Shown here: piece by piece, positions 5,596 to 6,870 of the stretch
Layout: each line of letters opens with the position of its first letter
How positions within the stretch are numbered: the first letter of the stretch is position 1
NCBI RefSeq assembly: GCF_009834535.1
Contig: NC_045713.1
Coordinates: 21,824,001-21,888,000, forward strand
Direction of reading: 5' to 3'
Length of the DNA stretch: 64,000 bases
DNA from: Camelus ferus
Lineage: Eukaryota
The notes under the pieces: generated by a model
Database searches by the model: none
The model's input: the letters and a program-made list of their open reading frames with translations, nothing else
What the model was told of the DNA's origin: nothing
Program-made: the position numbers and the translations under genes

Positions 5596-6870
5596 ATGGC
5601 GGCGTCCTGTGGGCTTTGGGACTGAGGACCCGAGCCGCTGGGCCGCTGTCCTGAAGCGCCACCCGGAGGTGCTGAGGGCGCGCGCGGGCCCTCGGGGACG
5701 GCTGGAAGCCCTGGACAGATGATAGGGCTGTGGAAGGATCGAGCGGGCGGGCGACTTTCTTTGTCCGGACTCCCCGTCACCGCCCTTCCCCAGGTATCGA
5801 GAGGAGTTGCCTGCGGCCATCAAGGGCCGAGTAGAGAAGCATGTGACACTAGATGACCTGGAGCAGTTGCTGGCGTGGAAACTGGCAGTGAGGCGCTTCC
5901 CACGTGGAGGGTGGAGTCTCCTCCCGGGGCGGGGCACAGCCACGTGGGCGTGACTTCCTTCTGGGCGGGCCCTCCTCCTTGAGGCGGACCCTCACGGCGT
6001 GGGCGTGGCTTCCTCCTGGGAGCCGGGACCCCGACGAGGTCTACCAACCCTGAACCCTGACACGACCTGGCCACAGAGGGGCCTTTTCCGGCCGCGCCTG
6101 CAGCAACTCGTGACCGTCAACTCCCCGGAGCTGGTGGTGCAGCGTTCGGCCGCCGCTTTCCGCCTCCTGCCAGACATGCACGCAGCGGTCATGGAATTGT
6201 GCGCTCTCCAGGGTGTGGGCCCCGCTACTGCCTTGGGTTAGTCGGGAGACCTGGGCACTCCGGCGGGGTTGCGGGCGGGACCTGGCCTATTAGCGTCCTT
6301 ATCTGTGAAGTTGCCTAACGGCTACGCACGTGACACCACACCGAGATCATTGGTAAGGGTGGCCCCAGGCTGAGTCTGTCCTGGGACTGATGGGGCCTGA
6401 ATGCTGGCCCTTCACTGCCCGCAGCGATCCTGGCTGCTGGAGCTCCCGAGGTGGCCGCTTTCATGTCTGAGGAGGCAGTGGCCGCAGTGCCTGGTTTGCC
6501 AGCCCTGCAGTACACTCTCAAGCACTATCTGCTGTACTTGTGCAGGGTGCAAGAGCGTGCCACAGCCCTGAGCCGAGGTGAGGAGACTGACGATGGTGGC
6601 CAGGGAGGGCATCCAGGACCCTGGTCAGGGTAGAGTGGGCACAGCTATCCAGCAGGGTAGGGTGGCCAGGGGCCCTGAGACCCAGACTCCCTCTGCTCCT
6701 CCCTAGGCAGGGCCTCAGGGCTGTGGACCCCTCACCACATGGAGACAGCACTGTGGACATGGGCTATGGGGCAGAAGCTGTGCCCTGATCTACTGCCTGA
6801 TCTCAGTCCCAGCCCAGCCACCCCCGACGACACCAGGCCAGCCAAGAAGCGCAGGACCCAGGTGGACTAA
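5596..6870 (+). pseudogene. Unnamed 5-exon gene for a ~231-aa HhH (DNA-glycosylase-like) protein with NLS; exon 1 disrupted
   Basis: Exons 5596-5721, 5794-5887, 6077-6236, 6425-6577, 6707-6870. Exons 2-5 are open, phase-compatible and GT-AG. HhH motif LCALQGVGPATA and C-terminal PAKKRR. The ATG at 5596 is out of frame with the rest of exon 1, and the intron-1 donor reads AT instead of GT. AATAAA at 6975. Confidence 0.8.

Follow-up and report, generated by a model that had tools for sequence, protein, structure and literature searches.

A clear homologue of the gene considered here is Drosophila Amun (CG2446). Papers that cite Shalaby et al. (2009) describe Amun as a nuclear regulatory protein that contains a glycosylase domain and modifies both Notch signalling and the development of sensory organs, and it is further reported to co-precipitate with Rad50 (PMC13076223). 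Drosophila Amun is a protein of about 550 amino acids with a long C-terminal extension, whereas the intact vertebrate members of the family have about 232 amino acids and comprise the domain only, and the camel copy is broken. This copy lies in a stretch of 64,000 nucleotides of Camelus ferus (NCBI RefSeq assembly GCF_009834535.1, contig NC_045713.1, positions 21,824,001 to 21,888,000 of the forward strand), here termed the window. On its plus strand the window carries a five-exon Amun-like helix-hairpin-helix (HhH) gene, flanked by STUB1 and RHBDL1, both on the minus strand. It is proposed, with a probability that we put at about 80%, that the Amun-like gene of Camelus is a unitary pseudogene and that its lesions pre-date the divergence of dromedary and Bactrian camels.

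Two lesions in exon 1 of the camel gene

The exon-1 features, exons 2-5 and the internal ATG at 6176 that had been described in the original prediction were all found again at the same coordinates when the window was re-read. They are given below, with lengths in nucleotides (nt) or base pairs (bp); the stop codon of the gene is entered in its corrected form, TAA 6868-6870.

5596-5721, plus strand: remnant of exon 1, 126 nt (intact species, 128 nt); when its codons are aligned to those of alpaca, hippo, cattle and zebra, ATG 5596-5598 is the orthologous start codon
Between 5622 and 5623, plus strand: lesion 1, in which 2 bp, one TG out of GAC TGT GAG, are deleted (TGTG to TG), giving a frameshift and TGA 5623-5625 after 9 codons
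5722, plus strand (donor 5722-5723): lesion 2, G to A at +1, which turns the intron-1 donor from GT to AT; intact species have gtaggg or gtaagc
5794-5887, plus strand: exon 2, 94 nt, open, with canonical AG and GT
6077-6236, plus strand: exon 3, 160 nt, open; first half of the HhH motif, S127L (6234) and the in-frame ATG 6176
6425-6577, plus strand: exon 4, 153 nt, open; Gly/Pro-rich loop and the position of E143-E144
6707-6870, plus strand: exon 5, 164 nt including TAA 6868-6870; basic KKRR tail

Translated directly, the frame that opens at ATG 5596 reads MAASCGLWD and ends at TGA 5623-5625; the conserved frame, GTEDPSRW, is offset from it and is closed upstream by TAG 5591-5593. This offset had been recognized in the original prediction and stands, but the single extra base to which it was ascribed does not, since exon 1 has 126 nt in Camelus and 128 nt in all intact species. 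Alignment to alpaca, hippo, cattle and zebra rules out a 1-bp insertion and reveals a deletion of 2 bp. At this site the four relatives read GAC, GGT, AGC and GGC, respectively, followed by TGT GAG, i.e., the TG is retained, and the loss of TG from TGTG is typical of deletion by slippage. The second lesion lies at the boundary of exon 1 and intron 1, which reads CAGATG/ATAGGG and in this way creates an in-frame TGA at 5720-5722 followed by TAG at 5723-5725; the corresponding boundary in the four relatives is ATG or GTG followed by GTAGGG or GTAAGC. Comparison with assemblies of related species, which had been named as a check on the loss, finds both TG and GT intact in alpaca, hippo, cattle and zebra, and these four also have identical exon lengths (128/94/160/153/164 nt) and the same synteny, with STUB1 (minus), the gene (plus) and RHBDL1 (minus) in this order. 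With the frame shifted and the donor lost, the canonical protein cannot be made.

Both lesions recur in an independently sequenced camel. The dromedary assembly GCA_000803125.3 has 99.6% identity with the window across 9.3 kb (0.4% divergent) and matches it base-for-base over 5565-5800, both lesions included. An older C. ferus assembly of 2012 (GCA_000311805.2) is near-identical to the window, with N gaps; its donor reads CAGATGATAGGG, i.e., the A is present, and the deletion site falls in an N gap. This gap of 718 N (3234-3951 of that sequence) spans the promoter shared by STUB1 and the Amun-like gene together with the first 74 nt of exon 1. The alpaca assembly GCA_048564905.1, in which both sites are intact, is 97.3% identical to the window. 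At the protein level, L62 and P215 are common to the window and to the proteins of C. bactrianus and C. ferus and are not found in the dromedary protein, which places the window with the Bactrian and wild camels within Camelus. A look-up for read-derived contigs with the allele-specific open reading frame (ORF) 5719-5853 gave no record.

Public annotation reflects the damage indirectly. The three available Camelus protein models have three incompatible N-termini, all of which bypass exon 1, and none is flagged as a pseudogene. The dromedary model splices after 8 nt, yielding MAA/YREEL, the C. ferus model starts inside the intron at ATG 5719 (MIGLWKD...), and the C. bactrianus Gnomon model (XP_045369394.1) employs two upstream exons (MAGIKTLE...).

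The original prediction held the lesions to be confined to exon 1. This is valid for the changes that break the ORF, but Camelus additionally carries S127L in exon 3, a change of TCG to TTG at 6234 within GPATAS, a stretch of the HhH motif that is otherwise constant. Among 24 orthologues ranging from mammals to oyster, neither S127 nor A124 varies; the former is altered in Camelus and the latter in alpaca. R77L was considered as a shared inactivating change and rejected, for this column is variable (Q in opossum, T in platypus). What the loss of exon 1 would mean for the protein can be seen from the AlphaFold (AF2) model of the hippo orthologue (mean predicted local distance difference test score, pLDDT, 88; predicted template modelling score, pTM, 0.83), in which residues 5-210 form one compact domain of twelve helices, with exon 1 encoding helices 1-3 and part of helix 4.

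Selection and the age of the loss

Signs of decay are found not only in the two lesions but also in the substitutions of the codons that remain open. By the Nei-Gojobori method the ratio of nonsynonymous to synonymous substitution rates (dN/dS, here omega) amounts to 0.19-0.31 for all pairs with hippo, cattle or zebra and to 0.70 for the pair of camel and alpaca, and parsimony assigns 23 nonsynonymous and 39 synonymous changes to the camelid stem as opposed to 12 and 5 to crown camelids. Omega as estimated by maximum likelihood (ML) was 0.84 in crown camelids, compared with 0.17 on the camelid stem and 0.19 in the background. In the test of crown camelids a single ratio was rejected (twice the log-likelihood difference, 7.55; p = 0.006) and omega = 1 was not rejected (p = 0.75). 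When exons 2-5 were taken alone, the Camelus lineage had an omega of 2.8 (p = 0.014 vs. the background of 0.19).

Because omega was 0.17 on the stem and 0.84 in the crown, constraint was kept along the camelid stem and lost around the camel/llama split, either once, just before it, or twice, in each of the lineages. Judged from its substitutions, the gene of Camelus now evolves like junk DNA. Comparison of the assemblies places both exon-1 lesions as older than the split of dromedary and Bactrian camels and younger than the split from alpaca. The former is dated to roughly 4-5 million years ago and that of camel and alpaca to roughly 16-25 million years ago. The proposal of unitary pseudogenisation put forward in the original prediction is thereby borne out as a real, lineage-specific loss of the canonical ORF, with lesions that the camels have in common and with both sites intact in their relatives. 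Its dating as very recent has to be abandoned, since both lesions are common to dromedary and to Bactrian and wild camels and since omega in crown camelids reaches 0.84 versus 0.19.

The course of events could be reconstructed as follows. The ancestral gene would have belonged to an old eukaryotic family and encoded a nuclear protein with an HhH-GPD glycosylase fold. Selection on it would have been relaxed around the camel/llama split, before separate disabling changes arose in each lineage. In Camelus, a slippage-type 2-bp deletion in codon 10 would have led to the frameshift and a stop after 9 codons, and the G-to-A change at donor +1 would have removed the sole good splice donor of exon 1. 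Camelus would thus have come to carry two exon-1 lesions and S127L, and alpaca W197* and A124T. The locus is probably still transcribed as a by-product of the bidirectional STUB1 promoter, as the name of the human gene STUB1-DT suggests.

Surviving products and other explanations

Several points weigh against the conclusion that the gene is a pseudogene. The branch model was fitted by an ML script of our own (GY94-F3x4) and not by PAML or HyPhy; substitutions in crown camelids are few (n = 17); over all codons, the Camelus lineage alone has an omega of 1.0 that differs from the background at p = 0.053, a borderline value; and alpaca alone, with an omega of 0.70, does not differ significantly (p = 0.11). 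The evidence for the loss consists of genome assemblies and annotation models, and the question of a second copy was addressed within the 64-kb window and by protein searches, which returned one locus for the Amun-like gene in each camelid species. Moreover, exons 2-5 have kept both an open frame and canonical splice sites, and a replacement for exon 1 can be conceived, as the following upstream exons are predicted.

4646-4669, plus strand: predicted upstream exon A of XP_045369394.1, encoding MAGIKTLE; antisense within STUB1 intron 1; its ATG is TTG in alpaca
4872-4996, plus strand: predicted upstream exon B of XP_045369394.1, with an AG acceptor and an AAG/GTCTGG donor, in a phase compatible with exon 2; antisense within STUB1 intron 1

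These last points lead to the alternative that survives best, although we regard it as unlikely: that the gene persists as a shortened or N-terminally replaced protein. Three routes to such a product can be drawn. The Gnomon exons 4646-4669 and 4872-4996, joined to exons 2-5, would give 239 amino acids; ATG 5719 with a cryptic donor at 5730 (GCT/GTGGAA) would give MIGL followed by exons 2-5, i.e., 193 amino acids; and a start at ATG 6176, which is in frame, would give 125 amino acids. The first two routes were recovered by a scan of ATG and donor combinations that match the phase of exon 2. The candidate products retain the HhH motif as well as the basic tail, and exons A and B have GT and AG sites, a suitable phase and an ORF without any difference between dromedary and C. 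ferus, so that an N-terminally replaced protein is conceivable.

Nevertheless, all three forms are devoid of the exon-1 helices, whose conservation extends from oyster to mammals and which belong to a single compact domain, and each retains an HhH motif in which S127L has altered an invariant residue. The start codon of the first route is TTG in alpaca, and its leader of 50 amino acids, antisense in a STUB1 intron, does not match the N-terminus that exon 1 encodes in the family. The cryptic donors, such as GGC/GTCCTG and GCT/GTGGAA, fit the consensus poorly; in the scan no good consensus match was obtained, and a usable cryptic donor of exon 1 was rejected. The 125-amino-acid product, which the original prediction had offered as a way for the gene to survive, lacks 7 of the 12 helices and keeps only the last five, so that more than half of the fold of the hippo model is gone, and no support for it was found. 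Splicing of another upstream exon into 5794 had been raised there as an objection to the loss; it is indeed predicted by the C. bactrianus model, but it does not overturn the loss, as the exon-1 helices would be replaced and not restored and exons 2-5 are unconstrained. It is the absence of exon-1 helices, together with the lack of purifying selection on exons 2-5 in Camelus, that makes a surviving functional product improbable and favours the pseudogene.

It was also considered that living camels have an intact gene and that the lesions are mistakes of sequencing or assembly in a first exon rich in G+C, a possibility already voiced in the original prediction. The region is G+C-rich, the 2012 assembly of C. 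ferus has its 718-N gap in this region, and short indels are a common type of error. Yet the independently sequenced dromedary, which differs from the window at 0.4% of sites, has an identical 2-bp deletion and an identical G-to-A change, and the A of the donor occurs in the 2012 C. ferus assembly as a third source. With lesions found in two to three independent assemblies, and with raised dN/dS and S127L as independent signs of decay, an error is unsupported and very improbable. The last alternative, in which a programmed frameshift at the deletion and non-canonical AT-AG or U12-type splicing of intron 1 would rescue the ORF, is supported by the open downstream exons and nothing more and is highly improbable. 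The donor ATAGGG is unlike the U12 AT-AC consensus ATATCC, the intron ends in CAG, and five other species have a usual GT-AG intron at this place; on these grounds an intron of the U12 or AT-AC type was rejected. No slippery or stimulatory element was noticed, although no search aimed at one was made, and neutral evolution weighs against a maintained recoded product.

Predicted glycosylase-like fold and probable losses in other mammals

The nature of the gene that was lost can be approached through its relatives. The 53 amino acids of exon 3 were searched against 1.84 billion representative proteins, and 133 relatives were returned, the best of them an alpaca protein with 96% identity, followed by proteins of reindeer, marsupials, fish, a crinoid and oyster. 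An alignment of the 24 orthologues has 32 invariant columns. The hippo orthologue is 41% identical to Amun of D. pseudoobscura over 181 amino acids (E = 5e-41); proteins of springtail, ostracod and insects that bear the name Amun belong to the same family, and the snake orthologue is named CG2446. The family extends to a streptophyte alga, and its fish member is zgc:112496. An enzymatic or biochemical activity was reported for no family member in the literature searched, which did not cover the paper of Shalaby et al. (2009).

Searches with sequence profiles gave little. Pfam returned nothing above threshold for full-length orthologues; matches to HHH and HHH_5 had E values of 1e-5 to 5e-3, all below the gathering score, and single exons gave one weak match to HHH. 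A sequence-profile search of the PDB yielded no significant match, and an ESM Atlas look-up with the exon-4 piece yielded only unrelated matches below threshold. The structural comparisons of the hippo model were more informative. Archaeal and bacterial Ogg2-type 8-oxoguanine DNA glycosylases (Tm1821, MjOgg and SsOgg) ranked at the top in Foldseek (TM-score 0.41-0.46, E = 0.04-0.1), followed by OGG1, MutY, AlkA, MagIII and EndoIII. VIA-align gave Z scores of 10.3-9.5 to four Ogg2 structures over 158-168 residues (model residues 1-201) and of about 7 to OGG1, MutY, EndoIII and MagIII. Of the chains compared, 136 had a Z of at least 5, and the best 50 of these 136 (Z of at least 6.4) were all HhH-GPD glycosylases. 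Identity to the Ogg2 and other HhH-GPD structures is only 10-16%, hence the match is one at the superfamily level. The model thus predicts for intact family members the two-lobed, all-helical fold of HhH-GPD DNA glycosylases, closest to that of Ogg2.

In the alignment there are a hairpin GVG (120-122), a Gly/Pro-rich loop (AAGAP) and, 21-22 residues downstream, an acidic pair, (D/E)143-E144, an arrangement that may correspond to the HhH-GPD signature. E144 is invariant, and the equivalence of position 143 to the catalytic Asp is judged by spacing alone. Bifunctional Ogg enzymes have a Lys at GVGxK, whereas the Amun-like family is without Lys there. An acidic pair without this lysine would fit a monofunctional-type site of the HhH-GPD signature. 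Residue 143 (codon at about 6463-6465) is Asp in most animals and Glu in hippo, cattle, camels, alpaca, dolphin and warthog; Glu143 may represent an active site that was altered in cetartiodactyls before any loss.

Camels do not stand alone in having a damaged copy. In alpaca (single assembly), the codon that corresponds to 6760-6762 reads TAG (W197*), so that the last 36 residues, with the basic tail, are lost; it is TGG in Camelus and in all outgroups. The NCBI isoform X3 of alpaca ends at W197*, and X1, X2 and X4 use an alternative acceptor that shifts the frame. The same assembly has A124T and G120S in the HhH motif. In the dolphin Delphinus delphis (GCA_949987515.2, gene at 1501-2811 of the extracted locus), where the gene is annotated as a protein, comparison with hippo reveals deletions of 2 bp in exon 1 (exon position 22-23, only a few bases away from that of camels), of 12 bp in exon 2 and of 1 bp in exon 5, and introns 2 and 3 have each lost the AG of their acceptor; this copy is an independent pseudogene. 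In the black rhinoceros, Diceros bicornis (GCA_020826845.1, gene at 1501-2917 of the extracted locus), exon 3 has a 9-bp deletion and an 11-bp insertion and exon 4 a 1-bp insertion relative to zebra, the insertions together shifting the frame and scrambling the HhH region. This loss is considered independent because the gene is intact in Equus. Protein models that look damaged were found for cetaceans, elephant (protein model only), rhinoceros and a colobine monkey, the last with many disruptions. The warthog (Phacochoerus africanus) protein has altered invariant residues (W43C, P80Q) and is one residue short in GPATASA; these changes, which come from the protein model, may point to incipient decay in suids.

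In human, the orthologous locus is, by gene nomenclature, STUB1-DT or LINC02867: the opossum and hedgehog orthologues bear the names "STUB1-DT" or "Long intergenic non-protein coding RNA 2867" (NCBI, UniProt), and the placement head-to-head with STUB1 is the same. STUB1-DT is the human gene ENSG00000260394, listed in an expression table, and this one line was essentially all that a search of the literature on STUB1-DT, LINC02867 and zgc:112496 returned. The parallel loss in human that the original prediction entertained agrees with this naming. The loss in camels is independent of it, since alpaca and other cetartiodactyls keep both sites intact. The arrangement in the window is as follows.

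5119-5270, minus strand: STUB1 exon 1, with its ATG at 5270-5268
6975-6980, plus strand: AATAAA polyadenylation signal, read directly from the window
From about 7500, minus strand: 3′ end of RHBDL1, from the window sequence

The two start codons, of STUB1 and of the Amun-like gene, are 325 bp apart, head-to-head in a G+C-rich interval. Elsewhere in the window there are two runs of N, at 11335-11626 (292 bases) and at 63167-63324 (158 bases).

In mammals, the gene seems to have undergone several independent losses. The broader proposition is that the vertebrate Amun orthologue is a conserved protein with an Ogg2-like HhH-GPD fold that is dispensable in placentals, with repeated independent losses in Camelus, probably alpaca, delphinids, black rhinoceros and catarrhines including human, where the relic would be the long non-coding RNA STUB1-DT, and perhaps in elephants; to this proposition as a whole we give about even odds. 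Gene-loss screens anchored on human coding genes would presumably not include such a gene. If repeated loss is indeed the case, the lineages concerned are natural knock-outs in which the role of a putative DNA-repair or chromatin protein may be looked for.

Taken singly, the camel gene adds one case to the lineage-specific pseudogenes, and the locus should be labelled accordingly in camel annotations. The wider value lies in what the gene is, a vertebrate counterpart of Amun with a predicted glycosylase fold, whose family has members in a streptophyte alga, in invertebrates and in most vertebrates. A map of its independent losses would bear on whether a factor of base excision or chromatin has gone unrecognised in vertebrates, and on the reason for which some mammals manage without it. 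In its features the camel locus resembles other lineage-specific unitary pseudogenes of mammals: an apparently single-copy gene at a conserved syntenic locus, apparently fixed ORF-breaking lesions that sister species share and a dN/dS of about 1. It differs from the typical ones in that the parent gene has not been characterised in any vertebrate and is classed as non-coding in human.

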